Shown one piece after another: positions 5,347-53,416 of a stretch of DNA of 64,000 bases. The stretch is from assembly GCA_020184695.1 (NCBI GenBank), contig JAANOX010000224.1:366730-430729 (forward strand), in the 5' to 3' direction. How positions within the stretch are numbered: position 1 is the first letter of the stretch; each line of letters begins with the position of its first letter. Source of the stretch: Histomonas meleagridis 2922-C6/04-290x. Taxonomy: Eukaryota > Protista > Parabasalia. A program made the position numbers and the translations under genes. The notes beneath the pieces are model-generated. The model saw nothing but the letters and a program-made list of their open reading frames with translations. It ran no database searches and was not told where the DNA came from.

Positions 5347-5355
5347 GTTAAAAAT

Positions 5356-5363
5356 AACGGTTT
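5356..5363 (+). promoter_or_regulatory. M3-like motif
   Basis: AACGGTTT 10 nt upstream of the minus-strand ATG at 5346. Confidence 0.4.
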
Positions 5364-22190: not shown

Positions 22191-22335
22191 AACTATTATA
22201 AATAAAGTTTTTTATGAATTTATTAAAAATTGAGTGAAATTTGGCGGAGTGTCAACTTTTTAAATAACTTTTGATCGTTCATATTTTTCAATTTGAATAT
22301 GTCTGTTTGGCAAAAACGAGAAAAATATTTTTCTT

Positions 22336-27393: not shown

Positions 27394-28749
27394 ATGCTTG
27401 ACAATGAAGCGAACCTCAACTTGGGATACACAGTAAGCCCATTTGGAGGTGAATCTAGGCATTCTACAAAGAGTAGGTCTATTTACATGCAGATGTTGAA
27501 ATCACTTCAACATTTAATACTCAATTTAAACGAAGAAAATATTGAACTAACTGTTCAACAAACCATGGATTTATATAGACCGAAATATCCATATTCTTTT
27601 AATCGCATTTTAAGTATTTTGATATATTATTCGTTTATTTCGCAACGAGAGGAAGGAGATACGTATTTAAAATTCATAAAATTAATTCAGAAAAAAGAGG
27701 AAGAAATAAATGAAAATGATCCTAAGATCATTGAAGTGTTTAGTAGTTATTTAAATGACATCCAATTCTCGCAAGAATGTGAATATTTTCTTGAAAAAAT
27801 GATTGAGCAAAATTTAATTGAGAAAAATATTATCAAAAAAAATCGATCGAAATATTTTGCGCATTATAAAACAGAAGAAGAGAACAAAGAATTATATGAT
27901 GATTTTTTTAGTTATATATTTATTCAACAATATGATAAACTTTCGAAGAATGATTGGGAACTTCACAAGAAATATATAAAAGAAGCAGTAAACACATCAG
28001 AAATCTCAAAAATAATTCGAAATGATGATTTAGATAAACTTCAAGAAATATCATCGCAAGCTGAATTTGATTTTAATCAAAAAATAAAACCATCACTTTA
28101 TGAAAGATTTTCATTTATTAATGCGGAAAATGTTTCATTAATTGATTTTGCAGCATTTTTTTCATCAGTTAAATGTTTTAAATATTTACTTATGAATGGT
28201 GCAAAAGTAAATAACACAGCAAAACATGCAACTGCAGGTGGAAACTTAGAAATTATTCATTTATGTGAACAAAATCATTCATCATTTGAAAAATCATATG
28301 AAACAGCAATCGAATTTCATCGAAATGATATCTTTAAATATATTTATAAGAACAAAATCGAAAATTTAGATAAAAATGTACAAAATTCGACTTTTTATAA
28401 TATAGATCAAAACATTTTGAGATTAGTACCACCGAAATCAGATGAATTAAAATCTAAATATCTTAAAAAACTATTAAAATATTCTGATCGAGAAGGAAAT
28501 TATGAAATTTTCTTATATTTAATAAAAGAAATAAAAATCGATTTCAAATTTATTAATATGTTGGCAAGAAATGGAAATTTATTTCTTGTGAAACATTTTC
28601 TGAAAGAATATCCAATTCCTAAAAATATTTTAGTTCCTTCTGTAAGTTCAGGAAACATTGAACTTGTGAAATATGTTCTTAAACATGAAGGAATCGATAT
28701 AAATGCTAAAATTTTTTTGTTTGATTTAAAGATTATTTTTTTAATATGA
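27394..28749 (+). CDS. DUF3447-ankyrin protein, N-terminal part (locus A)
   Basis: LIDFAAFFSSVKCFKYLLMNGA...AGGNLEIIHLCEQ...AIEFHRN; the ORF ends only after running into the first 80-nt spacer. Confidence 0.85.
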   Translation: MLDNEANLNLGYTVSPFGGESRHSTKSRSIYMQMLKSLQHLILNLNEENIELTVQQTMDLYRPKYPYSFNRILSILIYYSFISQREEGDTYLKFIKLIQKKEEEINENDPKIIEVFSSYLNDIQFSQECEYFLEKMIEQNLIEKNIIKKNRSKYFAHYKTEEENKELYDDFFSYIFIQQYDKLSKNDWELHKKYIKEAVNTSEISKIIRNDDLDKLQEISSQAEFDFNQKIKPSLYERFSFINAENVSLIDFAAFFSSVKCFKYLLMNGAKVNNTAKHATAGGNLEIIHLCEQNHSSFEKSYETAIEFHRNDIFKYIYKNKIENLDKNVQNSTFYNIDQNILRLVPPKSDELKSKYLKKLLKYSDREGNYEIFLYLIKEIKIDFKFINMLARNGNLFLVKHFLKEYPIPKNILVPSVSSGNIELVKYVLKHEGIDINAKIFLFDLKIIFLI

Positions 28750-29924
28750 TAATTCTAAATAATATATAGAAATCATTTGTTTTATTTCATACAGCTCTTA
28801 TGATGGCTGTATATAATGATGATGAAATATTAAAATTACTTCTTGAACAAGAAGAAATTAATGTTAATGCTAAAGATGATTTTTGTTTGTTAACTTTTTT
28901 GTTTATTTATTAAATTTAACATTATGTTCGTGTACTTGGAAATTGTTCAAATCATTTGAAACAGCACTTATGTTAGCATCTGAAATTGGTAATGTTAATG
29001 GAATAAAATTACTTCTTAAAAATGAGGATATTAATATTAATCAAAAAAATGTTTTTTCGTTATATTCGAATTTTTTAAAATAATTACGTTATTCCATAAA
29101 ATTTTTTGGAAAATGTTTACATTATTTGAAACAGCTTTAACTATAGCAATTGTAAGGAATCAAACAAATGTTGTGAAATTACTTCTTGAACAAGAAGATA
29201 TTGATATTAATATTGAGGATTTTTAATTGTTTAATTTGATTTTTATTTTGTTCATTTGATATATTAAAATAATATTTGGAATATATTAAATTTATTTAAA
29301 ACGCCACTTATATTTGCATCAATGAATAATAATGCTGAAATAATAAAATTACTTCTTGACAAAGAAGGAATTGATATTAATGCAAAAGATATTTGTTTTA
29401 TTTATTTGGCGTTTTTTAAAATGATATCATATATCAAATTAATATTTGAAATTTTTATAGATAATAAAGAACTGCACTTATTTATGCTTCTGAAAGAAGT
29501 AATAAAAAAATTGTTCAACTACTTCTTGAAAAAGAAGGAATTGATATTAATGCTAAAGATGTTTTATAGTTTTGTTTTGGTTTTATTTTAATAATTTAAA
29601 ATTTAATAGTTTTATATGAAAAATATTTAAATTATTTCAAACAGCATTGATTGTTGCAGCTAACAATGATCAAATAGAAATAGTTGAATTACTTCTTGAG
29701 CAAAAAGAAATTGATGTTAATGCTAAAGATATTTATTTGTGTTGTTATTTGTTTACTTTTGTTATCTAATTTTTCAAAGTATTGTTTGGAGATTGATAAA
29801 ATTATATTTTACAGCACTTATGTTAGCTTTCCAAAACGGAAATACAAAAATAGTCAAATTATTCGAACAAAAAGGTATTAAAATAAGTTCTAAAGATATT
29901 TGTTTAATTTTTTTGATAATATAA
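28711..29924 (+). repeat. Ankyrin array A: 7 ankyrin units separated by 80/83-nt AT-rich spacers
   Basis: Units start at 28791, 28961, 29131, 29301, 29471, 29641 and 29811 (170-nt period); each reads T(A/P)LxxAxxxxxxxIxKLLLxxxxIxINxKD-like. Confidence 0.92.
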
Positions 29925-30389
29925 ATGATTTGGATTAAACCAACTTTTTTTATAAAATAAAAATAAACATAGAAACCAAAATAAAAAACCAAAACAAGAA
30001 AAATTTATAATTAATAAAACTTGTTATTTCATAATAATTTTTTTTAAAAATATAATCATCAAATACGTTGAATTTTTTTTTTCTTTTGGATAAAAAAAAT
30101 AACTATGAGAAATATTCAAATAGAAATATAACTTTGTAATCTCTTATGACTGTATGTAGATTAAAATTGATAAAAATTGATTTCTTTATTTGGACATAAG
30201 CTTTTTATTTTTATCATTTAATAAATGAACAAAATTTAATGTTAAAAATTTATATTTTCATTAATATTCGTAGTCTTAAAAAAGTGTGTTGCAACAAAAA
30301 AGCATAGATTTACACAGAATATATCAGGCTAATTGAAATGAAAGTTAAACATTTTAAGGATATATTCATAACTCTTTTTTATTTAAATA

Positions 30390-30720
30390 AATCAAAAGAA
30401 ATTGCAGTATTGGAATTTTATTTTTTTCCTTTTGCTTTATCATAATGATATAATCATATAACTTTTCTGTTTATTTGAAAGATGAAAGATTATCAATAGA
30501 ACGATGATAAATCCTTTTCCTTGCTTCACCAATGAAGCATGTATTGAATTAAGGTCATCATATCCTCCAGTATAAAGTTGAATGTTTTGGTCATCAACAA
30601 CAAGAATAACTTTTCCAGAAGTTATGCATATTAAATAGTCGGATCATATTCATTTATTAAATGTCCATGCACAAATTGAGTTGTTAGTGCTAATGCAAAG
30701 CAAATGCACCAAAAACTTCA
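30390..30720 (-). pseudogene. Ras/Rap-family GTPase pseudogene
   Basis: Across frames: ALTTQFVHGHLINEYDPTI*, KVILVVDDQNIQL, GKGFIIV; stops and frameshifts present. Confidence 0.7.
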
Positions 30721-30954
30721 ATCACGTAACACCCATAGAAAAAAGAGCATTCAATTTTCAACAAAAAACGATTAAATTTATCAGAAAATGAATGGCATCA
30801 ATCACTGAAGTAGGATCATGAGATCTCATGCGATAATGAACTCCAGCCCCCATCAGTATTTTTGTAAAATAATGATTCCAGTACTTCATAAGAAGTATTG
30901 CATGAGCACATAAAAATGTGAAGAGTAAACCTTGTTTATAAATGGTAAAGGTTA

Positions 30955-31536
30955 TTAATTGCAACACCCTTTTTTCTCATTTTGGGTTGGCCCATTGGAT
31001 TGGATTTGAATTGACTTTCCCTTTGCACTTACTTTGATATTGCAATCTGCAATTTCACCAAATAAGTTTTCTACTCCATCACCTGTTATTGCAGATGTCA
31101 CAAAGTAGTTTTCGGCTAATCCTTCGTTCGATGTCAAATTATCAACAAACTTGGTGGCTTCTTCGATTTCATTGGAACTTAGTAAATCAGACTTAGTGAC
31201 TGTTAAGAAAATCGTGCATTCTGGTGAAATTTCGATAACTTTATCGATCCATTCAGTTAAAGTATTGAGGTTTTCTTTATTTGCACAAACAATGGCAACA
31301 TTTGCACCTCTATAATACATTGGCATAATGGCTTGATATTCTTCTTGTCCGGCTGTGTCCCATAAGTCGAGTTTAACTTTGATGTTTCGGCTGTTAATCA
31401 CAGTTTTGGTGTAATTTTCAGGGCTTACAGTAGAAACAGTTGAGAGATTTTCTCCCCTAAAGTAGTTAAGGAGGGAGGTCTTGCCCACACCAGAGCTTCC
31501 TACAAAAATTACTTTCATTGTATTTTCGTCATCCAT
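30955..31536 (-). CDS. Rab-like small GTPase
   Basis: GSSGVGKTS, WDTAGQEEY, TKSD, TSA, C-terminal GCCN prenylation signal. Confidence 0.93.
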   Translation of the reverse strand: MDDENTMKVIFVGSSGVGKTSLLNYFRGENLSTVSTVSPENYTKTVINSRNIKVKLDLWDTAGQEEYQAIMPMYYRGANVAIVCANKENLNTLTEWIDKVIEISPECTIFLTVTKSDLLSSNEIEEATKFVDNLTSNEGLAENYFVTSAITGDGVENLFGEIADCNIKVSAKGKSIQIQSNGPTQNEKKGCCN

Positions 31537-31735
31537 TTTGGATCAGTGAGTTACGGTTTCCTTTTTGTTTAGTTTACAAAACCGAAAATTGGTAATTAAT
31601 GTAAAATAAAACCTGAAATTATGGTTATTTTAGTGTTTTTAAGAATCTATTTAAAAAGTTTTTCGAAGATTTTTGATTGTTAAATAATTTTCAAATATTA
31701 TTTAGAAATAAAATTATTATTAAATATTTATTTTA

Positions 31736-33870
31736 ATGAACAAAAAAATTATTCAATTCAAAGGATTAAATATTCATTCATTATCATTTGGTACTAATGA
31801 TTCATATCTTAAAGCTATGGAACCTAAAATTAATAAGATATTACCATTAGTAGAAAAATCTTATGCATCTCATGGTAAGATTAGTCCTGAATTAACAGAA
31901 CTTCGAACAGATTTAATTACAATCATTAATAAAGAAACTAAGAATCCTTATGAATTAATTGAAAAACTTAAGACAGCTACAGATGTCCAAAAAGTTATTT
32001 CTAATTCTATGCAAAAGATTGGTGTATCTACAAAGAATTTAATTGAATCAGTCCAAAATAGAAATAAATCATCTAAAACTCAAGCAATTGCAGAAATCAT
32101 TGAATATGTCTCTAATTCTATAGCAGCTATATTCCAAGGATTAAATGTTACATCATGTGAAAATGATTCGATTTATAATGATTGTATTAGAATATTCGAT
32201 TCTTCTTTAATATCAGTACGTTCAATGATTGATATCCTTAAGACTTCTGCAGTTTCTTCTACTTCTATTCTGTTTTTTTTTTTAATGTAGATCTACACGT
32301 TCATTTAATAGAATGTTTGATTCGATGCTTGATATTATGGAAGTATACTAATATCCCAATTTATAAACAAAAGCCTACATCAGATATCGGTAAATCTAAA
32401 TTAGAATTCATGAGAATTGCTTCTGATGTAATTAAATCATTATCTTCAACTATTACAGCTAGAGCAGAATCTAAAATCCCCGAAACATTTGAAATAATGT
32501 TCAATTCACAAGTCGAAAAATTAGAGAAATCTATGAAAGAATTAGAAACTAAATCAACTAAATTATTACAATTAAATACTGATAAACAAGCAGAGAAAGA
32601 ATTTAATAATTTATTTGTTACTATTAAAGAACAATTTGGACAATTCAAAGCTAATGCTAAAAACCCAACATTAAACAAACAAGATTCGGCATTATTTGAT
32701 TTAGTGATTCATTTGGTGGGTTAACACGTGTTATTAATAAGTTAACTGATGCTGTACCTATAGTGCCTGATTTAGAAAATGCCGAAAAACTTAAGAAACG
32801 TTATGTAATGCCATCAGTACCTAAAGACACTGCTAATTTGAAAGTTATTGATTCAGTTAAGAAGTTAAATGAATATATTAATATTTATCAACAAAAGTCT
32901 AAAGCATTTTATGGATTATTCCCTAATGCAAAGAATGCACAATTAGCAGATTCAATGAATGAAGTATATACAGCTATAGATAATGTCGTATTACAAACAT
33001 TAAGAGTTTCAGCTATATCGATGAACTTAGAATTGCAAAGTGGTTTAGCAACTACTTGTAGTAACATTGCAGTAAATTATGATTCATTACTTAAGGAATT
33101 ACGTAGTAGATTCATGTTAAGTGGTGATTGGGATGGACAATCACCGAAATATAGAGAAAACATTAAGAACGCAATTGAAGAGACACAGAAAATCGTGCAA
33201 AAGGCATTAGAAATAGCCGAAGAAGAAGCTAAAGCACAAAATGCAGTTAACGCTAAGTTCACTAATGTATTAAATCCATTAACACAAGTTAAATCATCAT
33301 TAGAAACTTATAATGATAAAGTCAAGACAATGAAGTCAAGTATCTCACGTGAATATGCTACAAACATGTTTGAATTGGTATCACTTTATGCGACTCTGTA
33401 AATCATGTTGTGTTACATGCGAAGGCACATCCAAGTAGTGAAGAAAGCGTCGATAGTTATCTTTCATTAACTGAAGAAGTAACTGAACAAATGAAATTAT
33501 TACTCGACGCGTCAACTAAAATTACTTCACAAGAAAAGAAAGTCGAAGAACCCGAAACTTTGGTCATCGACAGAATGAAAGGATTAAATGGAATCGGAGA
33601 GAAATTCGCAAAGCCGCATAACAATGAGTCACCTGAAGCAAAGGCACTGAGAGAAGGCGTAGTAGTAATATGTAAAGGTGCAAACGCATTAGCAAACTCC
33701 GCAGAAACTGCTTTGACAAGAAGAAGCTGCAAAAGAAGGGCGGCGCTGTCGTGAGAGTTGGAACAACAAAGGAAAGTTTGCTCAAGAGATTGGAGCTCGA
33801 GTCAAGAGTCATTAGAGCACGTATCATACTCGAGAAGTCTGAGAAGAATCTCGCTGAACTTGGATGAAAT
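31736..33870 (+). CDS. Talin/HIP1R-like helical-bundle protein (I/LWEQ-like C-terminus), frameshifted in this sequence
   Basis: Four consecutive ORFs join by single-base shifts near 32270-32345, 32705, 33395 and 33712; the corrected end reads KRLELESRVIRARIILEKSEKNLAELG*. Confidence 0.5.
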
Positions 33871-34250
33871 GAGGAGAAAATTTAACGAAAAAATTAATTA
33901 AAATTACTGTGATGTTTTATACAGAAGAATATGGAAACATTTGGAAAGATCGAATGCGTCCTCATGTAATTACTTCTTTAATATAAACTTCGCACGCAAA
34001 TATATTATTCTGGACATAAGTTTCTCTGTTACGGATTTTTATATTTTCAACATCATTAATTATTTGGCGTGAAACTTGTATAATTTACATGGAGAAAAAC
34101 GACAAAAAGTGCAAAAGTTGTACAGTTGTGTAATGCTTTGAAATGATGCTGTAAACAGCGGCCGATGGATTTTTCTATAAAACGATAATGAATTTTGAGT
34201 AAAAAGTTCTCTTGCATTGAATTACCGTATTTACAGTTCGGACAATCCTG

Positions 34251-36645
34251 ATGTTTCTGTTTTTCTTCCTTTCTCTAACTGAAATTACTCGTTTCAGTAC
34301 TTGGTGTAATGGCATTTCAACAGGAGATTGTGAAGCTGAACTCCAACAAACAGATAATGAATTTTCTTTTTCACATATTGGTGAAAAAGATTATTCTGTT
34401 ACATCACCTCGTATCTCATGTCAACCTGGTGATGAAGTAACTGTTACTGGCGATGTTTTTTATATAAAAGGAGATGCTAAATTTCAAATCATTCCATACG
34501 ATTTTAATAATGATCCAGATTGGTCATTTCAATCTTATCCAGTTGTTGACTCACCTGGAGGATATGCTACTTATACTAGAAAATGGATTATTCCAGGAAA
34601 TTCACGTAATTTCACATTTCGTTTTGTCGGAAGTAATATTACCAATTTTAAGTTTAAATCTATAAAGTGGGATATAACTGGTCACTACGATGCGCCCACA
34701 ATTCGAAATGTCGAACTTGAAAATTCAAACATCAAATTAACATATGATACTCTTTTATTAAATATGACAATTCATGACAAAACCACCCAACGAACTTGGA
34801 CTCAACGTAGACAAACTATTGGTGGCACTACAATAAATTTAAAAACTACCAGTAGTTCAATTTCTATTGATACAATTACACAAGATAATCTTATTCACTT
34901 TAATATTGAACTTTTAGAGGATGGCTTTCGATCTACAGTTGCTCTTGATAACAATAACTCCGAAATTCTTCCACCAGATTATCCGTTTCCATTTATCTCT
35001 TCACTTGGAGATCGTATTGTACTTCCATACTGTGAAGGCATCACACTTCCTGTTGATTTAACCGAACTTCTTGGACGTGATGAATTTTATTATAGTATTT
35101 ATAGTTTATCAATGGCATTTGTTGGTCAAACAAATGATCTAAGTTCAATGATAATAATATTTGAAACGCCTTATGATAGTTCAGTAGCCGTTGTCCGTTA
35201 TAATGAAGAATATTTATATATTAAACCACGATTTAGTCTTGAGAAAGGACGCTTTTCATATCCTCGAAAACTTCGTTATGTCTTTTTAGAAGGAAATCAT
35301 GTTTCTATAGCCAAAAGATATCGAAAATATGCGCAAGAAAAAGGATATTTAGTACCATTTACAGAGAAAATTAAAACTCGTCCAAACGTTGATAAATTAA
35401 TTGGCGCAGTTAATGTATGGACTGTTGGTAGTTTTAATATTAATAAAATCAAATTATATACCGAAATGCAATCGTTAGGAATCGAACGAATATTATCATC
35501 AGGTGGAGGATCAATCAGTGAAGTTAATTATATGAATAATAATATGACTAATATCCTTTCAAGTCGATATGATATTTATCAAGATCAAATGGATCCCGAA
35601 AATATTATCAAAGGTTATGTAAGTAATTCGACAGCATATTTTTATGATGCATTTCCTGATGATGTTATTGTTGATGAAAATAATCAAATAATTACTTCAT
35701 GGTCAGTAAATAATTTATCATGTCCAGCATGTTCAACACTTGAAGAATGTCCACGAGTTGGTTGTGCAGTATTATGTGACTTAAGAGCGCCTGAATATGC
35801 AAAGAAGAAACTTGATAAAGAAATTTCTTCTGGTTATAACTTTACAACACGATTTATTGATACGACATTTGCATCACCTTATCGTGAATGTTATCATCCA
35901 GATCATCCTATGACTCGAACAATGTCATTAGAAGCACGAATCGAACTTTTAAAAGGAATATACAAATCGTGGATTTGTTGTAGGAACAGAGAATGGTAAA
36001 GAACAAGCTATACCTAATTGCGATTTCTTTGAAGGAATGATGAGTCCTGGCGAATATAGAGTACCTAACTCTGGAAGAGATTTAGAAACAGTGTTTACTT
36101 ATGTTCCTGAAGAAACTCAATATATGGTTGATGAAACTTTACGAATTCCTTTGTTCGAACTTGTTTATCATGATTGTGTTATAAGTTATTGGTATTGGGG
36201 AGATCATAATTCGAAAGTAATTCCTCAATGGGATAAAAGAGATTTGTTTAATCGATTATATGGAACTCCTCCAATGTTTTTGTTTAATCAAACAATTTGG
36301 GAAAGATATAAAAATAGATTCGTTCAATCTTATAAAACTGCAGAAGAAATTTCTTATTTAACTGGATATTATGAAATGTCTGATCATAAATATTTGTCTG
36401 ATGATTGGAAAGTACAACAAACAGTGTTCGGTAATAATAGGGTTATTGTCACCGTAAATTTCGGTGATAAAAAATTCGGAGGTATTGAACCAATGAGTAG
36501 TACTGTCATCGTTTATACAGATGCACCTCCTTGGGCAATTGCTGTAATTGTAATTGCTGCTGTGGTAATTGATGGAATAACTTTTCTTGTCCTTTTTATA
36601 ATGAATAGAAAAAAAGGTGAAGAAAAAGACTCCAATGAAGATTAA
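34251..36645 (+). CDS. Membrane-anchored glycoside hydrolase (GH101/GH129-related), one frameshift near 35960
   Basis: Signal peptide and CBM-like N-domain; RFIDTTFASPYRECYHPDHPMTR; NRGFVVGTENG...FFEGMMS after the frame shift; IPLFELVYHDCVISYWYWGD; C-terminal TM. Confidence 0.65.
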
Positions 36646-36714
36646 AAATAATGTGATATAAATAAATATTAATATAAATGATGGAAATTTCTGTATTTAA
36701 CAGATCACATCAAT

Positions 36715-37140
36715 ATAAAACATACTTTCCACTGGTTTTCTGGTGTCTTTATTCCTGTATTTTATAATCTTCTATGTGTTACATATTTTCTTGATTTACA
36801 TCATACAATTTCAAACATTGGTTGGGGCTATAGTCTTCTTTTTATTTTATTATCACATGTGTTTCCATTGGAACACTTACAAGCATTTGTGTTATTGCCA
36901 TTAATGGAGAAATGAAAGAAGGCGGATGTTATTATTTATTATCACGTACACTTGGTCCCGAAATTGGGGCTGCCATTGGTATAACTATTGTTATAGCGCA
37001 TTCTACCTCTGTATCTCTTCGATTACATTATGTTTCTCTTCTTATCACAAATTTTTATTCGAAACCACTTTTGTCATCACTTTATTGGGATCGCGTTTTA
37101 TGGCAATTTCTTTTAATTATCTCCTTTTTCATTTAGTAAT
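36715..37140 (+). pseudogene. SLC12/amino-acid permease N-terminal fragment
   Basis: FTGFSGVFIP...NIGWG...NGEMKEGGCYYLLSRTLGPEIGAAIG; frameshifted and cut off where ankyrin locus B ends. Confidence 0.7.
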
Positions 37141-37440
37141 TTAACTATTTCTGTATATCCTTTTTCATGTGCTAACTTAAGTGCTGTATCAAATAATTTA
37201 AATATTTTCCAAATATTATTTTGAAATATCAAATTATTAAATTTTAAATAAAACAAATAAATATTTTTAGCATTAATATCAATTCCTTCTTGTTCAAGAA
37301 GTAACTTAACTATTTCGGCGTATCCAAATTCAGATGCACAAATAAGTGCTGTATCGATTAATTTACATAATTTCCAGATATTATTTTAAATTATCAAATT
37401 ATTGAAATTAATATCAAACAAAATAAATAAATATCTTTAA
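37113..37440 (-). repeat. Ankyrin array B with spacers (80 nt and 75 nt)
   Basis: Units start at 37352 and 37187 (minus strand); spacers 37432-37353 and 37262-37188; the last unit ends in TAA at 37113. Confidence 0.85.
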
Positions 37441-38270
37441 CATTAATATCAATTCCTTCTGATTTAAAAGATATTCAACGAGTTCAATGTTCCATAATTC
37501 GGGAGAGTATGCAAAAATATTTTTTGGAATTGGATTTTCTTTCAGAAAATAATTAATGAGATAAAGATTACCAATTTTTACCATATTATTGAGAATATTT
37601 TCATTTATTTTCATTCCATTTTTCTGTAAAAACATAAAAACTTCAATGTTCAAAAACATAATACATAGAGAGCCTAATTTTTTTCTATATCATCCATTTC
37701 GATAATTTTATTTTCATAAAGATAATTAAAAATATCATTTCGATGAAATTCAATTGCTGTTTCATATGCATCTTTAAATGATGAATGATTTTGTTCACAT
37801 AAATGAATAATTTCAATGTTTCCACCTGCAATTGCATATTTACCTGTGTTTTCCACTTTTGCACCATTCATAAGTAAATATTTAAAACATTTAATTGAAG
37901 AAAAAAATGCTGCATAATCAATTAATGAAACTTTGTTTTTATTAACAAATGAACATCTTTCATAAAGTGATGGTTCAATTATTTGATTAAAATCAAATTT
38001 TGGTTGTGATGTTATTTCTTGAAGTTTTTCAATTTCATCATTTCGAATTATTTTTACAATTTCATTTGGATTATGTCCTTCTTCAATATATTTCTTATGA
38101 AGTTCCCAATCATTCTTTGATAATTCTTCATAATTAGCAATGATTTGGTTAAAATAGCTAAAATTTTTTTGTTTATAAATTTCTTCTTTAGACATATAAT
38201 GGATAAAATATGGATTTTCCTGATCTTTCAATATTTTTAGATCAAGAATATTATTTTCATACATTTTCAA
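37414..38270 (-). CDS. 5'-truncated DUF3447-ankyrin gene (locus B), possibly a pseudogene
   Basis: LIDYAAFFSSIKCFKYLLMNGA...IAGGNIEIIHLCEQ; two frame shifts (near 37670 and 37460); family N-terminus missing. Confidence 0.65.
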
Positions 38271-38339
38271 AAGTGGATAATATAATTTTTGCTCGTAAAT
38301 TCCTGTGTAATTTGGATCGAGGTCAATAAATTTTGCAAA

Positions 38340-38473
38340 AAGAAGAAAATTAGTAAAATCGCCTGAACTCTGCGTCTTCCGACATTGTGTCTTTTGGCGA
38401 TATCACGCTGACTTAGACCTTCGATAATGTCAGCTTTGATCAGCTCATCAACATTGACCATTGAGTTTATCAT
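38340..38473 (-). mobile_element. Transposase-like HTH remnant
   Basis: IIEGLSQRDIAKRHNVGRRRVQAIL matches the HTH pattern of Tc1/mariner-type N-termini; no catalytic domain follows. Confidence 0.45.
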
Positions 38474-40585: not shown

Positions 40586-40891
40586 AAAATTTTGTTTGGC
40601 AAATCTTTTTTTTATTGAATAGTTTATATATAGGATTTCAGAATGTTGTGTGATGTGATGTTTGAATTGCTTCAAAATTTACCCAAACCGTTAAAAACAA
40701 TGAAAAAGCCGATACATATCGTTAGTGAAGACAAATCATAAAAAAATGAAGAAGCAAAAACAATTAAATGATATCGAAATTCATCAATCAATAATGCAAA
40801 CCCTCTTTAGGTTGGCTAAAACAAATATTATAGAATCAGCAAATTCAATAATTGACATTTTTGATGAAAATCATTATTTAAAATATTTGAA

Positions 40892-41825
40892 ACAGCACTT
40901 ATGAAAGCATCTTCAAAAGGTCATATAGAAATAGTTAAGTTACTTCTTGAACAAGAAGGAATTGATATTAATGCTAAAAATATTTATTTGTTTTATTTGA
41001 TATTTATTTTAATAATTTTGGGATATTTCAAAATAATATTTAAAAATTATTTTAATTATTTAATACAGCACTTATTTTAGCATCTTATTATGGTCATACA
41101 GAAATAATTAAATTACTTCTTGAAAAAGAAGGAATTGATATTAATGCTAAAAATATTTATTTGTTTTATTTAAAATTTATTTTAATAATTTTGGATTTCA
41201 AAATAATATTTGGAAATTAATCCAAATATTTTATACAGCACTTATTTGTGCATCTTCAACTGGTTGTACAGAAATAGTTAGATTACTTCTTGAACAAGAA
41301 GGAATTGATATGGATGCTAAAGATATTTATTTGTTTTATTTAATATTTATTTTAATAATTTAAAAATTCAAAATAATATTTGGAAATTATTTAAATTATT
41401 TTGGACAGCACTTATGAATGCATCTTTATATGGTCATACAGAAATAGTTAAATTACTTCTTGAAAAAGAAGGAATTGATATTAATGCTAAAAATATTTAT
41501 TTGTTTTATTTAAAATTTATTTTAATAATTTTGGATTTCAAAACAATATTTGGAAATTATTTAAATTATTTGGAACAGCACTTATATTAGCATCTGAAAA
41601 AGGTCATACAGAAATAGTTAAATTTCTTCTTAAACAAAAAGGAATTGATATTAATGCTAAAAATATTTATTTGTTTTATTTAAAATTTATTTTAATAATT
41701 TTATATTTCAAAATAATATTTGAAACTTATTTAAATTATTTCAAACAGCACTTTATGTAGCATCTATACAAGGAAATGCCAAAATAATTAAACTTTTTAA
41801 TGAAAAAGTAAAACAATCAGTCTGA
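40892..41825 (+). repeat. Ankyrin array C: 6 units with 83/80-nt near-identical spacers
   Basis: Units at 40892, 41065, 41235, 41405, 41575 and 41745; the last ends in TGA at 41825; not captured by the ORF track. Confidence 0.93.
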
Positions 41826-44705: not shown

Positions 44706-45226
44706 ATTGTAAATAAACTGTGTTTAAATGTATATAAAGTTTTATTCTTTGTTGCGGATTGAATCTGCAAATTTTTCAAAAATGTATAAAATGTTCTATA
44801 TGAGATACACAACATAATATATATTTGTATTCATATGATTTAATATTCGAATAAAATATTAATATGATCTCGCTTACAGATAAATATGATAGAAAAATGA
44901 TTGAAGATTATATTTATGGATATTATGCAAAATCTATTTAAAGAGAAATTAATTTATTAAAAGAGAAATTAAATTTATGTATATTAAGCATAATTAAGCT
45001 TTAATTAAAGAGAAAGTTTAAACAAACAGTTCCAGGAAGAACTCACTTTGTTCAAGAAATAGTTCAAACAATAACACAAAATAAATATATAATCTTTAAA
45101 AGTACATTATATATGACATGCAAATTTATTTTAATCAAGTGATTGCGGAAAGGTTTCCCAATGATACAATTCTGGAGTGTTTGACATTTCATTATATATA
45201 TATATAATACAAATAAAACATGTTTA

Positions 45227-46177: not shown

Positions 46178-46725
46178 TTTTTATATATTTTTTATTGTTT
46201 AATTCAGTCATTTCGATGGAATCATCCACTGACATGTTTTGACAAATTTGGAATAAAGTATTAAATTGTTTTTACAAAATTTCAATTTCAAATACCAATA
46301 AAATGCTCTAAAACAACTAAATAAGCATTAGATATTTATAAGCTAACCAAAAATGCTTAATGTTTATGAAATGCCTTCGAAAAAGTTGCAATTCGGAAAT
46401 TATATTACATTTGATTAAGAATTAAATTTAAAGTTAAAACTAAAAATCCATTTCATGTTTGACTGGTGACGCTTAATTCCAAAATATTTCTAAATCTAAA
46501 AAAACATCTTATTCAAATTGTTCAAAAAACAAAAATTTATTATAAGCGTTACAGTACTGTGAAAGGCAAATCAAAAAAAGTTTTATAAATGAAATCAACT
46601 CTTAAACCAGAATAAGAAATTTGTTGGATCATTCACAGGGGTGACCTGGATTTTGATCTCCGCGTCACTTTTTGACCTTGGTTTATAATGTAAAGTTAAT
46701 AAATCATCGATCACATCACCAACGT

Positions 46726-48141
46726 ATGGACAAAGATACTGATCAGATCCCTTACGAAGAAATTGGTAAAGAAACGGATTGGATACCTCTTAACCAAAGG
46801 GAGTCCTTATCCATATTCCACATTATGGGAATTTGTTGTTCAATGCTTGCATTCCAGATTGCATATAGTGTTGAATTTGCCTTAGGCACGCCAATCATGT
46901 CACGCCTTGGCATTGCGCAAAGTGTACAATCCTTAATTTGGTTCTCTGGTCCACTTTCTGGATTTATCGTCCAGCCATTAATTGGTTTTTATTCAGATAT
47001 TACCATGGCAAAAATGGGGCGAAGGCGTCCATTCATTATTGTCGGCGTTATTGGTATCTTGTTAGGATTTGTATTATTATTATTTGTTGAATCACTCGGA
47101 AACGCAATGGGCAAAAGCGAATCTGCAAAGAAAGGACTTAAGATCTTCATCTTCACACTTGCGCTTCTTATTACAAATATTTCCATTAACGTACTTCAAG
47201 GACCATCACGTACATTAGTGGGAGATGTAGTTCCAAAGGTACAACAAGTTAAGGCCAATACCGTTGGTTCACTTATGATAGGTATTGCCGCAATTATTAC
47301 GAATCTTATTGGAGGATTAGATCTAGCGACCAAACTTAAGTTACCATTTGATAATGAGAAACTTATCTTTATCATTGGTATTGTTCTTATAGCTATTGGT
47401 GTTATAATTACATGTGTAGTTGCTAAAGAAGAACCACTTCGTGTTAAACCAGTTCGTGCAAATCCATTAAAGGAAATATTCCAAGCTGCACGTAATGTAC
47501 CAAAACCAGTGTTACGTATAGCTATAGTTTTCTTCTTTTCATGGATGGCTTATTATCCATTTAACATTGAAACAACTGATTTCTTCGGATTTGATATTTA
47601 TGGCGGTAGATCAAATGGTACAGATAGACAAAAGACAATATATAATGATGGTGTTAACTTCGGTATGCTTGTAATTGCTGTATCTAATGTTTTAGTTTTA
47701 ATTTATGGATTCTTCCAAGAAAAGGTTATTCAACTCGTAGGAATGAAATTGACTTATGCTTTATCACAGATCATCGAAGGTATTTGTCTCGTCTTAGTCT
47801 TCTTCATTTCAAATAAATGGGCTTTGATGGGTATCTTCGCACCACTAGGTATTTCTTGTAATATATTCAACTCTGTTCCTTACGCTGTCGTAGGAATGTG
47901 CGTTTCTCAAGAACAAATGGGTACTTATATGGGCGTACTTAACTCTTGTTGTGTTGTTGGTCAACAAATTTCTAACTTTTTGCTTGGATCTGGTATAGGT
48001 GCTTTGTCTCCTGATTGGAAGGCTCCAATTCTTGGTTGTGGTTCAGTCTTCGCATTCTTGTCAGCTTTGTTGTGCTTCTGGATTATTGTTCCTGAACAAC
48101 AAGAACAAGAAATGTTGGAGCCACTTAAAACAGTCGAATAA
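46726..48141 (+). CDS. MFS sucrose/H+ symporter-like transporter (GPH/SLC45 family)
   Basis: QIAYSVEFALGTP, SGFIVQPLIGFYSD...GRRRPF, NVLQGPSRTLVGD, GTYMGVLNSCCVVGQ. Confidence 0.92.
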   Translation: MDKDTDQIPYEEIGKETDWIPLNQRESLSIFHIMGICCSMLAFQIAYSVEFALGTPIMSRLGIAQSVQSLIWFSGPLSGFIVQPLIGFYSDITMAKMGRRRPFIIVGVIGILLGFVLLLFVESLGNAMGKSESAKKGLKIFIFTLALLITNISINVLQGPSRTLVGDVVPKVQQVKANTVGSLMIGIAAIITNLIGGLDLATKLKLPFDNEKLIFIIGIVLIAIGVIITCVVAKEEPLRVKPVRANPLKEIFQAARNVPKPVLRIAIVFFFSWMAYYPFNIETTDFFGFDIYGGRSNGTDRQKTIYNDGVNFGMLVIAVSNVLVLIYGFFQEKVIQLVGMKLTYALSQIIEGICLVLVFFISNKWALMGIFAPLGISCNIFNSVPYAVVGMCVSQEQMGTYMGVLNSCCVVGQQISNFLLGSGIGALSPDWKAPILGCGSVFAFLSALLCFWIIVPEQQEQEMLEPLKTVE

Positions 48142-48273
48142 ACAAAGTAAAAGAGTAAAATTTAATCTTTAAACTTTTAATTTTTTATCATCACATCAAA
48201 TTTCTTGATGCATTGTATCGTTTTGGGGTGTACCATAGTACGATAGCTGTACAAGTTAAGTGTTATATAATAT

Positions 48274-49788
48274 ATGTATTACTCAGGGAACATGCAATTT
48301 ATTAATGGACAACCAACACAATTTCAACAGACACCTCAAATGCAATATAATGCATCGCAAAAATACCAAAATTTTACATATTTTTCTGGATATAATCAAT
48401 TTGGATATCAATATGGATATGAACAACAGGTATATTCTAATTTTACAGGAAATGGCTATCAACAGTTTCAACAAAAAATTAATAGTAACACAGATTATGA
48501 ACCACATAATAACAGTCATTTCCAACAAGTAGATTATACTCAAGCTAAGTCACAAAATAGACAATCAAATGGCATGAATCCACAATCTGATTACTTGAGA
48601 AATAGTGGAATACAATTTGAGCAATCAAATCGTACACAAACTAATCAATGGTATGATTATCAAATTGAACAGCTAAACAACTCACAACCTAATCATCAAA
48701 ATTATGCACAATTCCAACAACCAAACAATGCGCGAACAGATTACGCAAGAGAATATATACCAAATAATTCCCAAATCAATCCTCAAACTTATACTCCAAA
48801 TATAACAGCACAAACAAAACAATCGTTACGCAGCGAACAATACAAAAATCGTAACAAGCAAATGAATGTAACTCAGTACGAACATCCAAACACAGCACAA
48901 CTCAGTCAACAAAATTATTCACAAATCACTTACATGACAAATACCATAGCGCAAGCAGAGCAAATAGATAACGCTCATTACGAACCGACAAATGCACATC
49001 GGTTTAGTCAACAAAATTATGCACAGTCCAATCAATTAAATAGTACACAAACATATTACGCAAGAAATATCATAACACAAACAGAACATATAAATTGCGC
49101 TCAGTACGACAAACAAAGTTATACACAGCTACAACAATATCAGCAACCGAACAATGGACAATCCAATTACATATCAAATGTTAAACAAAGTAATGCACTA
49201 TATCAACTTCCAAACAATGCAAACGCATACTACGCAGCACAAACACAATACACTCCGAATGCGACAGCACAAAACATTACGCCCACTCTCACATACACAG
49301 GCAAATGCATTCGCATTACTTCTGCTGCGACATTTGCTGAATTCACAGAGAAGCGAAAGCAGCTTCAGCTTGATTTTGTACAGCAACTTAGCGATGCAAC
49401 AATGAATGCTGTCTCCGACATAACCAATGCATTCGACACTATTAACACTGAAGATAATGAAAATCAAATTCAACAAATTGATGCAAATGAAAATGAGAAC
49501 AAAAACTTCGAATCAATTGTTGACACACGTAATGCCGAACGTGTAACTAATTATCTTTTGAATAACAAAAAAAGTAACATAAAAAAGGAAATGGAACAAT
49601 GTCAAGTGCCAATTCTTTTGTGTTTTCTAATGACTGCATGCGACGCAAATGAGCAAATGAAAGAAGAAATTGTGAAATTTGTTGCGTACGCGATCGAAAT
49701 TGTAGAGGAAAAGAAGAAAAAGGATAAAATAAATGAAGCAGATACTGTGATAAGTGAAACGAAGAGGCAATACAAAGGAATAATGTAA
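48274..49788 (+). CDS. Gln/Asn/Tyr-rich low-complexity protein
   Basis: 504-aa ORF; about 340 aa dominated by Q/N/Y/T, then a charged helical C-terminus. Confidence 0.7.
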   Translation: MYYSGNMQFINGQPTQFQQTPQMQYNASQKYQNFTYFSGYNQFGYQYGYEQQVYSNFTGNGYQQFQQKINSNTDYEPHNNSHFQQVDYTQAKSQNRQSNGMNPQSDYLRNSGIQFEQSNRTQTNQWYDYQIEQLNNSQPNHQNYAQFQQPNNARTDYAREYIPNNSQINPQTYTPNITAQTKQSLRSEQYKNRNKQMNVTQYEHPNTAQLSQQNYSQITYMTNTIAQAEQIDNAHYEPTNAHRFSQQNYAQSNQLNSTQTYYARNIITQTEHINCAQYDKQSYTQLQQYQQPNNGQSNYISNVKQSNALYQLPNNANAYYAAQTQYTPNATAQNITPTLTYTGKCIRITSAATFAEFTEKRKQLQLDFVQQLSDATMNAVSDITNAFDTINTEDNENQIQQIDANENENKNFESIVDTRNAERVTNYLLNNKKSNIKKEMEQCQVPILLCFLMTACDANEQMKEEIVKFVAYAIEIVEEKKKKDKINEADTVISETKRQYKGIM

Positions 49789-49906
49789 ATACATAAATTC
49801 ATTTCCCCTCCAAATGAAACATCAGAAGAATTAAACCAAGTTGAAGATGGTGTGCCCGAAAATATATTTTTTGAATGAAATTAATACAGATTTTAGGCAG
49901 ACCGCA

Positions 49907-50193
49907 GTGAAAAACCCGTAGACCAACACCTTAATATAACCCACGCCTACACTGTAGCATTATTCATATAAAACATATTTAGTAATATATATTTAATAAA
50001 TTTTTTTTCGATTTGGTTTTTCACTCACTTCACTAAGGAGAACGTTAACATGAAAAAATCTTTTTTCTTTACATATTTTGATTAATTCATATTTTTGGGA
50101 CTGAACATATGTTAAAATTTTTATTTGCTAACAAACTATGTAAAAATTTATGATTTATCTAAAAATTTGCTGTTGGTCTACAGGTTTTTTCAC
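49907..50193. mobile_element. Small TIR element (MITE-like)
   Basis: GTGAAAAACCCGTAGACCAACA (49907-49928) and TGTTGGTCTACAGGTTTTTTCAC (50171-50193) are near-perfect inverted repeats; CA lies on both outer sides. Confidence 0.55.
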
Positions 50194-50219
50194 CATGGCG
50201 TGTGGAGATTAAGAAATCT

Positions 50220-50550
50220 TATGAAGAAGAAATATGGATAACCCAAATTATTGGAAACGCCATAAAATAGCATTTGCTTGCTTAGCTACTTATACTGGGT
50301 ACATTTTACTATGGAGATGAAATTGGTGATCTTCATGATCATTGGTATTTGGAATTTCTTCATTTCAAATGATAACCTTTCAAGAACTGATGGTCATATT
50401 GAATGGTTTAACAAAAACCAACAAAGATTGTGTTTGTGGTTAATAATGGAACACTCCCAACAAATTTATATGACAATTGTGGGGGAACTTATTTTAGAGA
50501 TTTGATGACAGGACGTGAAATACATTATACTGCGATGCTCTCACGGTAAG
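50220..50550 (+). pseudogene. Possible GH13 (alpha-amylase family) C-terminal fragment
   Basis: GTFYYGDEIG and KIVFVVNN across broken frames. Confidence 0.35.
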
Positions 50551-51075
50551 TATTTAGTAAATATTTAATGTATTTTGCAAAATCACTTTAATGAGCACAA
50601 ATTTTTATTGAAAAAAAATCGAATAATAATGCTTTTGAATCACGGGAAATAAGCAAAAAATGAACACATATTTAGTTTGAAATAAATCATTTTTGTTGCT
50701 TATTTTTTAAGTATAATTTTTATGAAATTTATTAAAGTTTGATATAAAGAATCATTCTGAAAGGGATAAGATGAGATAGGATGATAAAAGAGTTATATAC
50801 TAGATGTAATATTATTGATATCAGATTGTCTAATTTGGTTGTGGTTCTTTTGATCAATTTTTTTTCCATATATATTTTTAATTACCGTTCCTATGTTATT
50901 GCCACTTTTGTGGTAAAGTGTTAAAATTAGGAGGTTATTTCATACATTCTTTCAAACGGGAAACAATCAAAGCCAAAAATCAAAACATCAACAAAAAAAA
51001 AAACACATATCTAATATTACAAAATCTTGAATAATATTCAATTTAAATGAAGAAAATATTGAGGACTCTATAAAA

Positions 51076-52170
51076 ATGACTCTGAATTATTTTGATGATA
51101 AATATACATATTCGTTTAATTTTATTATTTGTAGTATTATATATTCATTTTTCATCTCAAAATATGATGGGGAAATATGTGTAAAATATTTGAAATTACT
51201 TGAATCTAAAGAAAGAGAACTTTATTCAATTAATGATGAAAATATAATATATATTTTTGTAAAATTTTTAAATAATCGCAATGAAGAAGAATCAAATTAT
51301 CTTCTTAATAAAATTTTTGAAAATAGCCTCATTGAAATAAATCAAAAAATCATATCGCGTACACTATACTTTTCACATTATTTATATTCATATGAAATCT
51401 TCAAATATGAAAGTTTTGTAAAATACAAATCATTTTATAAAAACATTAGAATACTTAAAAAACATAATTGGAAACTTCACAAAAAGTTAATAAAAGAAGG
51501 GGTTAATCCAAATGAAATTGCGAAAATCATTCGAAATGATGAAATAGAAAAACTTCAAGAAATATCATCACAAACAAATTTTGATTTTAATCAAAGAATT
51601 GAACCATCACTTTATGAAAGATGTTCAATTATAAATAAAGAAGATGTTTCATTAATTGATTACGCAGCATTTTTTTCTGCAGTTAAATGTTTTAAATATT
51701 TACTTATGAATGGCGCAAATGTAGAAAAAACAGGTAAATATGCAATTGCAGGTGGAAACGAAGAAATTATTCACTTATGTGAACAAAACCATTCATTACT
51801 TGCATGTGCATATGAAACAGCAATTGAATTTCATCAAAATGAGATTTTTAAATATATTTATGAAAATAAATTAAGGAAAATTTATAGTTTAGAAGAATTA
51901 GGAACTAAATGTATTTTATCTCATAACTATGAAATTTTATCATTTTTACAAAATGAAGGAATGCAAATTTGTGATTTACATATCATTGCTTCAATTGAAA
52001 CAGGTAACTTATATTTAATTCAGTATTTGCTTGAACAATATGTGATTGATACATATATACCAAGAATTTCAACAATTTCATGGAATAAAGAACTTTTTAA
52101 TTACCTTGTTACAAAGAATTATATTAACATTAAAAATAAGAATATTTCATTATATTATTTGATATTTTAA
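51076..52170 (+). CDS. DUF3447-ankyrin protein, N-terminal part (locus D)
   Basis: LIDYAAFFSAVKCFKYLLMNGA...IAGGNEEIIHLCEQ; the ORF ends inside the first spacer. Confidence 0.85.
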   Translation: MTLNYFDDKYTYSFNFIICSIIYSFFISKYDGEICVKYLKLLESKERELYSINDENIIYIFVKFLNNRNEEESNYLLNKIFENSLIEINQKIISRTLYFSHYLYSYEIFKYESFVKYKSFYKNIRILKKHNWKLHKKLIKEGVNPNEIAKIIRNDEIEKLQEISSQTNFDFNQRIEPSLYERCSIINKEDVSLIDYAAFFSAVKCFKYLLMNGANVEKTGKYAIAGGNEEIIHLCEQNHSLLACAYETAIEFHQNEIFKYIYENKLRKIYSLEELGTKCILSHNYEILSFLQNEGMQICDLHIIASIETGNLYLIQYLLEQYVIDTYIPRISTISWNKELFNYLVTKNYINIKNKNISLYYLIF

Positions 52171-53416
52171 AATGATATTTATGATTTATTAATAATATTT
52201 AAAAAAATATTTAAAAGCTCATGCCATAAAAGGTTGTTTGATCTTGCGATGTTTCTTATTGAAAATGAATTAGTTGATGTTGATGATATTCATTTGTTTT
52301 ATTTGAAATTTATTTTAATAAATTGATATTTCAAAATAATATTTGGAAATTATATAAATTATTTTTTACAGCACTTATATATGCATCTTCAAATGGTCAG
52401 ACAGAAATAGTTAAATTACTTCTTAAACAAAAGGGAATTAAAATTATAGTCAAAAATATTTAATTGTTTTATTAAATGTTTATTATAATAATACTGGATT
52501 TCAAAATAATATTTAAAATTTATTTGAATTACTTAATCGAGCACTTAGTATTGCTAGTGAGCATGGTCAAATAGAACTTGTTAAATTAATTCTTGAACAA
52601 GAAGGATTTGTAATTAACTGCATGAATATTTACTTGTTTTATTTGATATTTATTTTAATAATTTGTAATTTCAAATTAATATTTGGAAATTATTTAAATC
52701 ATATAAAAAAGCAATTTTATTGGCATCTGAAAAAGGTCATATAAAAATAGTTAAATTACTTCTTGAAAAAGGAATTGATATAAATGCTAAATATAATGAC
52801 ATTTAATTTAATAATTTTGGATTTCAAAATAATATTTGGAAATTATTTAAAACAGCACTTATTTGGGCATCTGAAAAAGGTCATATAAAAATAGTTAAAT
52901 TACTTCTTGAACACGAAGGAATTGACATAAATACTAAATGTGATTACATTTAACTTAATAATTTGATATTTCAAAATAATATTTGGAAATTATTCAAAAT
53001 ACTTATTACAGCACTTATGATTGCATGTCAAAAAGGTAACAAGAAAATAGTTAAATTGCTTCTTGAACAAGAAGGAATTGATATTAATGCTAAAGATATT
53101 TATTTGTTTTATCTAAAATTTAATTTAATAATTTGATATTTCAAAATAATATTTGGAAATTATTTAAAATATTTCAAACAGCACTTATAGAAGCATCTAA
53201 AAATGGCAATACAGAAATTGCTAAACTACTTCTTGAACAAGAAGGAATTGATATTAATGCTAAAGATATTTATTTGTTATATTTCATATTTAATATTATA
53301 ATTTGATATTTCAAAATAATATTTGGAAATTATTTAAAATATTTCAAACAGCACTTATGTATGCTTCAAAAAATGGTAATACAGAAATAGTTAAATTACT
53401 TTCTAAACAAAAATAA
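52144..53416 (+). repeat. Ankyrin array D: 7 units plus a degenerate first unit, with spacers
   Basis: Units at 52368, 52538, 52708, 52852, 53008, 53178 and 53348; preceding spacers 80, 80, 80, 57, 66, 80 and 80 nt; final TAA at 53416. Confidence 0.9.

Follow-up and report, generated by a model that had tools for sequence, protein, structure and literature searches.

Genes encoding DUF3447-ankyrin proteins in Histomonas meleagridis are interrupted between adjacent ankyrin repeats by T-rich spacers, which we consider, with a probability of about 0.55, to be a lineage-specific set of unconventional introns that multiplied along with the ankyrin repeats, one for each repeat. The stretch analyzed (the window) comprises 64,000 nucleotides (nt) of contig JAANOX010000224.1 and carries five loci of this family, A to E. 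According to our model, genes A, C and D, together with paralogs on another H. meleagridis contig (L005, WSYJ01000186.1), would be working or recently working parabasalid DUF3447-ankyrin genes with one T-rich, intron-like spacer in each beta-hairpin between adjacent repeats, and the unit of a 90-nt repeat plus its spacer would have been multiplied by tandem duplication. The Histomonas spacer would represent four tandem copies of an element of ~20 nt, resembling the single spacer of 21-37 nt at the same hairpin position in Tritrichomonas. The spacers would be taken out of the transcript before translation, most likely by a splicing reaction with ends departing from GT...AG and from the ACTAACACACAG motif of parabasalid introns, and the mature protein would consist of an N-terminal domain and 6-8 contiguous ankyrin repeats, ending at the stop of the last block. 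From homology and paralog statistics, we strongly infer that the spacers are removed in Histomonas; removal at the RNA level and the exact boundaries are predicted from the sequence. The current annotation most likely truncates these genes.

Ankyrin repeats with a spacer in the beta-hairpin

The repeated unit comprises a 30-codon block with the pattern T-A-L-x-x-A-S-x-x-G-x-x-E-I-V-K-L-L-L-E-x-E-G-I-D-I-N-A-K-D/N, followed by a T-rich spacer, which we measured from after the D/N codon up to the Thr codon. Each 30-amino-acid (aa) block covers positions 4-32 of the 33 positions of Pfam Ank (PF00023) above the gathering score (24-38 bits for nine single blocks, against a cut-off of 21.1). Four profile positions are missing between consecutive blocks, and the spacers are located in the beta-hairpin between consecutive ankyrin repeats. 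One junction without a spacer, in the metagenome contig L004, retains 12 nt (NVMFES; N-VMFE-S), the length predicted by the Pfam profile. An nhmmer search with a model built from the units matched the window only at 21856-22170 (locus E), 28637-29897 (A), 37494-37119 on the minus strand (B), 40873-41812 (C) and 52289-53413 (D). In all five loci, which belong to the DUF3447-ankyrin family, 90-nt ankyrin blocks alternate with T-rich spacers; the open reading frames (ORFs) of genes A and D match PF11929 and have homologs in H. meleagridis, T. foetus and T. vaginalis. All arrays end in a shortened last repeat with an in-frame stop soon after helix 2 (codon 24 in B, 26 in C and 22 in D), as described for B, C and D in the first-pass annotation, which had been made from the letters of the window alone. 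The framework of arrays B, C and D is near-identical.

When remeasured, the spacer was exactly 80 nt at every start for which that annotation had given this length, including 22082 in locus E. Of the two spacers reported as 83 nt, the one at 40982 (C1-C2) has this length, and the one at 28878 is 83 or 80 nt, depending on the DD codon. The description of the spacer as fixed in length did not hold: the window also contains spacers of 65 nt (first junction of gene C), 75 nt (B1-B2), ~57 nt (D3-D4) and ~66 nt (D4-D5), the last two being in frame yet containing TAA. Two more family members are carried by L005. In one of these arrays, four spacers are exactly 80 nt despite strong sequence divergence, while those of the other (L005:4200-6700) measure 280, 180, 140, 100 and 63 nt and show an obvious 20-nt repeat. 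Across the family, spacer lengths range from 21 to 280 nt, and all residues modulo 3 occur among those of 57-280 nt. Nineteen diverged spacers from the window, L005 and the metagenome contigs L003, L004 and L008 align without gaps at exactly 80 nt when registered from the Thr codon, and MAFFT introduced zero gaps among 22 spacers. The gap-free subfamily alignment, alongside the 63-280 nt of the L005 paralog, indicates that the 80-nt length is strongly conserved within a subfamily and is not a family-wide requirement.

The 80-nt spacer consists of four degenerate copies of a unit of ~20 nt, starting with ATTTATTTG, ATTTATTTT, ATTTCAAAA and AATTATTTA, and most copies end in TTTGG(A). Tandem Repeats Finder (TRF) detected a period of 20 inside the spacers, and the autocorrelation of T has maxima at lags 20 and 40. 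Since 80 is 4 x 20, the paralog changes in 20-nt steps and the Tritrichomonas spacers are about one module long, a length ruler is not needed to account for the 80 nt, and the length-measured mechanism put forward in the first-pass annotation is contradicted by family lengths of 21-280 nt that change in steps of ~20 nt. On the sense strand, the spacers are composed of 35% A, 4% C, 8% G and 53% T (87% A+T), with the minus-strand locus B included, whereas the other non-ORF DNA of the window has 73% A+T, with A ~ T and no T/A skew. An RNA-level feature would be expected to show such an asymmetry between the strands, which we therefore counted in favor of the intron reading.

Protein-level constraint across the spacers

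All 31 blocks tested, from eight arrays, were stop-free, as were all 22 units for which this had been claimed in the window. The joint probability is ~1e-12 given the divergence from the family consensus; it was obtained by placing the observed differences from the consensus at random and treats the blocks as independent, so that it is overstated, though not by twelve orders of magnitude. No block contains a frameshifting indel, the sole length change being the loss of one in-frame codon in D3. For the comparison of blocks with spacers in Histomonas, paralogs were used. In the old array A, the spacers (p-distance 0.40) and the synonymous sites (proportion of differing sites, pS, 0.45) are equally diverged, and the nonsynonymous value of the framework is lower (pN=0.32). 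In the young array C, the divergence is 0.087 in the spacers, 0.056 at synonymous sites (pS) and 0 at synonymous sites of the framework, while the hypervariable codons (the codon before Thr, numbered -1, and block codons 4, 5, 8, 9 and 11) reach pN=0.56, often with two or three bases changed per codon. Among the binding-surface codons -1, 8 and 9, which were chosen in advance, 8 of 9 columns are variable, versus 24 of 161 elsewhere (Fisher p=5.6e-6). Since conversion tracts cannot homogenize codons 6-7 and 10 yet leave codons 5, 8 and 9 different, this pattern points to selection at the protein level. Such selection on the ankyrin blocks, claimed in the first-pass annotation together with the proposal to weigh block dN/dS (nonsynonymous over synonymous divergence) against spacer divergence, is well supported by the stop-free blocks, the surface-codon excess of array C and the framework restraint of array A. 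The diversifying selection at binding-surface codons in a poultry pathogen makes the family a candidate for host or partner interaction.

The chief rival, appreciably less probable than the intron reading, holds that the genes end at the first spacer as annotated and that the arrays are untranslated relics (pseudogene tails or 3' untranslated regions), young and homogenized by gene conversion. The AUGUSTUS models and all database proteins do terminate at the first spacer, no canonical splice sites restore the frame, and an almost identical framework in B, C and D suggests gene conversion. Array A and the L005 arrays, however, are old (spacer p-distance 0.40, pS 0.45), yet their blocks are without stops or frameshifting indels, and the changes in array C cluster in surface codons next to framework codons without synonymous change. 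Decay of the family is evident at loci B and E, and array D has irregular spacers and has lost the Thr codon in D2 and D3. Still, neutral decay, of which dN/dS near 1 and accumulating stops and frameshifts would be the marks, fits locus E and the N-terminal part of locus B and not arrays A, C and D or those of L005. The relic reading also has to contend with the orthologs described below, in which purifying selection acts on the downstream segments just as it does on the annotated ORF.

In T. foetus, the annotated protein TRFO_16669 (on L011) terminates within a T-rich spacer that follows the hairpin Gly of an ankyrin repeat, and intact ankyrin repeats follow downstream of the spacer in other frames. 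Orthologs from related organisms were available in an ENA metagenome (L018; 55% identity to TRFO_16669 over the annotated part) and in Logan run SRR31611284 (L021). The three genes share three spacers at identical hairpin positions and of unequal lengths: 22, 37 and 25 nt at junction 1, 22, 33 and 26 nt at junction 2, and 21, 25 and 31 nt at junction 3 (L011, L018 and L021, respectively). With length differences of 4 and 11 nt between the orthologs, junction 2 by itself displays all three frame relations. Nevertheless, the three segments 3' of the spacers have dN/dS values of 0.02-0.31 at pS 0.47-0.68, compared with 0.22 for the annotated upstream ORF. Because protein-level constraint extends across junctions that are free in length and frame, the spacers must be excluded from the message. 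A conserved flanking code with an insert free in length and frame is the general mark of an intron, and this comparison of sequences demonstrates that in Tritrichomonas the homologous spacers are kept out of the coding message, which is how an intron is recognized in operational terms. The first-pass annotation had proposed that the spacers are removed or skipped; their exclusion was upheld by the three-way comparison, and none of the routes suggested for it (length measurement, ribosomal bypassing or DNA-level excision) was.

A more distant Tritrichomonas-like relative (L010, from the same Logan run) has spacers of 22 and ~79 nt followed by an intact 168-aa ankyrin ORF, within which the later junctions are without a spacer. 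Other T. foetus ankyrin genes near TRFO_16669 (L011:700-1450 and 12150-12760) also have T-rich hairpin spacers, of ~22 to 66 nt depending on the hairpin codons counted, some of which are in frame, open and annotated as coding.

The orthologs also bear on the possibility that the blocks are silent cassettes that donate sequence to an expressed ankyrin gene by gene conversion and are under protein-level selection although untranslated in place, which would resemble the vls or variant surface glycoprotein (VSG) pseudogene arrays or the variable lymphocyte receptor (VLR) cassettes of lampreys. Hypervariable surface codons on an invariant framework with invariant spacers, a frame that is not preserved from cassette to cassette, and several arrays within 30 kb would suit such a system. 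Every array, however, has its own N-terminal domain and its own stop, our searches gave no spacer-free acceptor gene with this framework, the proteins are without recognized surface-antigen features, and the TRFO_16669 orthologs are single, syntenic genes under purifying rather than diversifying selection. Altogether, we regard the cassette explanation as improbable.

It is more improbable still that the spacers stay in the mRNA and are passed by the ribosome, either by a -1 frameshift (80 = 81-1) or by a fixed-distance hop. An 80-nt spacer does put the next block in the -1 frame, and in array C frames 0 and -1 are open across most spacers, with a U UUA AAA heptamer in one unit; most spacers of A, D and L005, however, have stops in both frames and thus leave no stop-free path, and neither the heptamer nor any other slippery or take-off site is conserved. 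The spacer lengths (57-280 nt, all residues modulo 3) and the differences of 4 and 11 nt between orthologs are likewise difficult for this mechanism, and the search for a conserved stimulatory RNA structure was negative: RNAalifold paired no bases when given the spacer alignment, and whole units yielded just 4 trivial pairs. Because of the stops in both frames and the ortholog length differences, we exclude frameshifting and hopping, and ribosomal passage appears largely refuted by the sequences. Three coding solutions and a variant genetic code were also rejected. A -1 frameshift at U UUA AAA fails because the site is not conserved; a spacer coding in the downstream frame (NNIWKLFKLF-x-TAL) is ruled out by TGA or TAA in place of the Trp codon in several units; and reading the spacer in frame 0 as a hydrophobic C-terminal tail fails because the length of this tail is not conserved, three units stopping after one or two codons. 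As for the variant code (TAA = Gln), the in-frame TAA was an artefact of the TRF consensus; the real blocks are stop-free, and the other genes use standard stops.

Least probable of all is an excision of the spacers from the DNA of an expressing nucleus or cell, the assembly showing the unrearranged form. It draws on the lack of RNA splice signals and on short direct repeats at the spacer ends (ATTTATTTG ... ATTATTTG); a deletion between these repeats was considered and rejected, since it leaves 11 nt and breaks the frame. Two independent Histomonas assemblies and several metagenome and Logan assemblies agree in the spacer-containing layout, none of them showing a rearranged version, and we know of no DNA-excision system of this kind in parabasalids.

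Spacer boundaries and known types of intron

The nine orthologous Tritrichomonas spacers start with GT (four), AT (four) or GC (one), and all end in G (AAG, GTG, ATG and, in six, TGG). A spacer of T. foetus has the textbook form of a short intron (GTATTG...AG, 22 nt), (A/G)CTAAC is located five bases before the end in 2/9, and a terminal AG is present in 1/9. The 5' consensus GTAYGT or GTWYWD stands exactly at the exon boundary in 4/9 Tritrichomonas spacers; the Histomonas spacers do not follow it. By their appearance, the Tritrichomonas spacers would be derived from the short class of parabasalid introns, their ends having degenerated.

In Histomonas, positions 1-2 of the spacer are AT in 20/25 units and GT in 2/25. 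GT is common at position 9 or 5, but pairs with no in-frame AG, and the sole AG near the 3' end is that of ACA-G in Thr-Ala, which is lost where Thr is encoded by ACG or ACT. The T. vaginalis-type 3' motif (ACTAACACACAG or TCTAAC-H(1-2)-AACAG ending in AG) occurs in the window at the chance level, with 0 matches inside the arrays. Pairs of GT-AG, AT-AC, GT-AC, AT-AG and GC-AG were tried at every position, and no solution is common to all units. The first-pass annotation was therefore right that no GT...AG pair restores the frame and that canonical parabasalid splice signals are absent. All 25 units are stop-free, with the most uniform ends, for removal of positions 1-77 (AT...TT, with the hypervariable codon kept), -1 to 75 (AT...AT) or 3-82 (TT...AC). 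The missing Pfam positions and the spacer-free junction of L004 suggest that ~12 nt of the spacer are coding, so that the removed piece would be 68 nt; with the corresponding boundaries (4-71 or 9-76, for example), 2-5 units would retain a stop. A branch-like TTAAAT, TTAAT or CTAAC element lies a few bases before the 3' end of the spacer, where the dinucleotide is not fixed. Rfam gave no match at E<=1 within 20000-54000, and the tRNA scan was empty; together with the RNAalifold result, this gives no indication of a structured self-splicing or endonuclease-cut RNA element such as a bulge-helix-bulge or hairpin intron.

Several of our observations weigh against the intron reading. The ortholog test was performed in Tritrichomonas, not Histomonas. 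An exact 80 nt across diverged copies is not expected of neutral introns, and the total absence of small indels in T-run-rich sequence diverged by ~40% is unexplained by neutral evolution. In the exhaustive scan of starts and ends, no dinucleotide pair unites uniform ends in all units with a hairpin of ankyrin length, and several candidate boundary sets leave a stop in 2-5 units. Protein searches for gene A and TRFO_16669 did not turn up a longer product that looks spliced: the exact product of gene A was absent from the records searched, as were longer near-identical proteins for either gene, and the Logan contigs for P0027 were genomic and spacer-free. The family produces pseudogenes (B and E), and since B keeps intact blocks, intact blocks alone are no proof of current function. 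Finally, parabasalid spliceosomes are reported to require GT-AG and the 12-nt 3' motif (PMC12316389).

The introns of T. vaginalis and T. stableri fall into a short type B (23-28 nt) and a long type A (56-196 nt) (PMC12316389, PMC6260720). The spacers share with them a parabasalid host lineage and a GC content below that of the flanking exons. The Tritrichomonas spacers (21-37 nt, ancestral-looking) are in or near the type B size range, including the one with GTATTG...AG and the two with (A/G)CTAAC close to the 3' end, and some T. vaginalis introns are also located in ankyrin genes. Unlike Trichomonas introns, most spacers begin with AT rather than GT, have a 3' end that is GG, TG or not definable rather than AG, and are without the 12-nt ACTAACACACAG or the TCTAAC..AACAG motif; up to 7-8 are present per gene, versus one (rarely two) in Trichomonas, and the Histomonas spacer is a four-fold tandem of a 20-nt unit. 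The layout, with one interruption per structural repeat at the same place and with length and sequence copied along with the repeat, recalls the exon-per-repeat genes of animals (ankyrin, collagen). The introns of those genes, in contrast, are GT-AG, free in length and set in intron-rich genomes, whereas the Histomonas window otherwise contains single-ORF genes, on which basis we take the rest of the genome to be essentially intron-free.

U12-type AT-AC introns resemble the spacers in their AT start. Read from the AT of the GAT or AAT codon, the spacer 5' end is ATATTTAT, compared with ATATCCTT in the U12 type, an AC follows a TTATTTAAA element at a distance of 11-12 nt, and flexibility of the 3' end is known for the U12 type. 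However, an intron ending at that AC has a frame-breaking length, only a TT start (positions 3-82) preserves the frame if the AC of the Thr codon is taken as the end, and the 5' and branch consensus are matched only if C-to-T changes are allowed. The window thus offers AT-rich look-alikes rather than a true /ATATCCTT start, TCCTTAAC branch site and in-frame 3' AC. Like the spacers, euglenid non-conventional introns and the elements of programmed translational bypass (T4 gene 60, the yeast mitochondrial 'byps') are short non-GT-AG insertions in genes for a continuous protein, but euglenid introns need pairing between their ends, and the spacers have no conserved pairing; bypass depends on take-off and landing codons that match and allows little variation in length, and the spacers conform to neither requirement.

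Parabasalids are textbook near-intronless eukaryotes with rigid splice signals. About 63 introns have been validated in T. vaginalis, nearly always one per gene (PMC12316389), and T. foetus has been described as intron-poor, with splicing playing little or no role (PMC12428144). The full-text literature that we searched, on introns and ankyrin genes in Histomonas, introns in Dientamoeba, introns and RNA-seq in Tritrichomonas, and introns in T. vaginalis, contained no description of per-repeat interruptions in ankyrin genes. According to the relevant papers, introns in parabasalids are rare, follow GT-AG, are bound to the motifs and nearly always occur singly; predicted Tritrichomonas introns are treated there as unvalidated. 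If the spacers are spliced, genes with seven or more introns exist among parabasalids, with ends that violate the rule of GT-AG plus branch motif, so that motif-filtered pipelines discard such introns by design; the DUF3447-ankyrin family of Histomonas, Tritrichomonas and gut relatives would then be systematically misannotated as short proteins. A broader proposal, that the Tritrichomonadida (Histomonas, Tritrichomonas) possess an RNA-excision pathway for T-rich spacers built of 20-nt modules, needing neither GT-AG nor the parabasalid 3' motif, is tentative, and we hold it to be rather doubtful. Such a pathway would act repeatedly in a single gene and could rely either on a spliceosome whose recognition of the ends is much relaxed or on non-spliceosomal machinery; 'intron-poor' genomes would then hide a large class of unannotated introns, and an entire protein family would stand annotated as truncated.

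The individual loci and related sequences

An identical ArfGAP ORF (54112-56457) is present on two H. meleagridis assemblies, GCA_020184695.1 and GCA_020186115.1, in agreement with the parabasalid host guessed in the first-pass annotation. Both are genomes of Palmieri et al. 2021, annotated ab initio by AUGUSTUS (PMC8529796). The window is gene-dense, and outside loci A-E every gene is a single long ORF; the neighbors include an oxysterol-binding protein, KRR1, a cyclin, CDC50, Sir2, MBOAT, a kelch protein, an MFS transporter and ArfGAP.

The N-terminal ORF of gene A (27394-28749, plus strand) encodes 451 aa with DUF3447 (Pfam, 1.2e-10) and matches to Ank families in degenerate ankyrin repeats; it enters the first spacer and terminates inside. 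Its homologs, Histomonas 'caskin' models and metagenome proteins, likewise end at the first spacer. Array A (28711-29924, plus strand) contains seven 90-nt blocks, starting at 28791, 28961, 29131, 29301, 29471, 29641 and 29811, each preceded by an 80-nt spacer (28711, 28881, 29051, 29221, 29391, 29561 and 29731). The period is 170 nt in 6/6 cases, with a -1 frame rotation at each unit, and A7 ends seven codons past its block at the stop 29922-29924.

Gene C (40746-41825, plus strand), with an initiator (Inr)-like TCATA 9 nt upstream of its ATG, has an N-terminal exon of only 27 codons (40746-40826), followed by the 65-nt spacer (40827-40891). Blocks C1-C6 start at 40892, 41065, 41235, 41405, 41575 and 41745, with intervening spacers of 83, 80, 80, 80 and 80 nt, and the stop is at 41823-41825. 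In gene D, an N-terminal ORF of 364 aa (51076-52170, plus strand; Pfam DUF3447 8.2e-07) is followed by array D (52171-53416), which begins with a degenerate half-block (52216-52287). Blocks D1-D7 start at 52368, 52538, 52708, 52852, 53008, 53178 and 53348; the spacers, counted from the one before D1, measure 80, 80, 80, ~57, ~66, 80 and 80 nt, and the stop is at 53414-53416. D2 and D3 begin with Arg and Lys, respectively, in place of the first-codon Thr, and TRF reported periods of 170 and 147 in this array.

Locus B (37113-38270, minus strand) is a pseudogene copy with its DUF3447 N-terminal domain in pieces (ORFs 38270-37674 and 37659-37414) and both ankyrin blocks intact. An 80-nt spacer (37432-37353) is followed by B1 (37352-37263), a 75-nt spacer (37262-37188) that is in frame and open, B2 (37187-37116) and a stop. 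Locus E (21437-22260, plus strand) is a dead remnant with fragments of the N-terminal domain, an ankyrin ORF (21911-22081), a spacer (22082-22161) and a stop-bearing block. It exemplifies an array that is no longer maintained, with stops in the second block and the spacer still exactly 80 nt.

On L005, the stretch 4200-6700 contains an intact DUF3447-ankyrin ORF without a gene call in the public record. At L005:12097-13614, an annotated Ser/Thr-rich protein of 505 aa has its ATG 9 nt upstream of the Thr codon in the last ankyrin block of P0004, and is probably the C-terminal part of this preceding gene rather than a separate gene. That this ORF continues the last block was set aside as evidence, being ambiguous because of the position of the ATG. 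In a metagenome relative, a gene for a DDE_Tnp_IS1595-type transposase lies ~2.5 kb downstream of the ankyrin array (L008:4380-5279, L009:4622-5521). Logan run SRR31611284 contains genomic contigs of an undescribed Tritrichomonas-like organism (L010 and L021). A scan of prokaryotic genomes returned one contaminated contig, without an array, from a metagenome-assembled genome (MAG): CALUSQ010000040.1 (L022), filed as 'Candidatus Gastranaerophilales', carries the gene for a DUF3447 protein of parabasalid type, 46% identical to gene A, and is eukaryotic contamination of the MAG bin. A pattern scan of metagenome DNA gave two matches, both by chance.

Elsewhere in the window, the ORFs 34251-35999 and 36037-36645 (plus strand) look like one gene with a single frameshift near 35960-36000, due to an assembly error or a pseudogene; a second interrupted gene was ruled out here, the break being a plain frameshift without a T-rich spacer. 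Short in-frame tandem repeats with periods of 6-51 nt at 13641-14311, inside ORF 13460-15217, and a 21-nt period at 56145-56349, toward the C-terminal end of the ArfGAP ORF, resemble coding repeats of the ordinary low-complexity kind.

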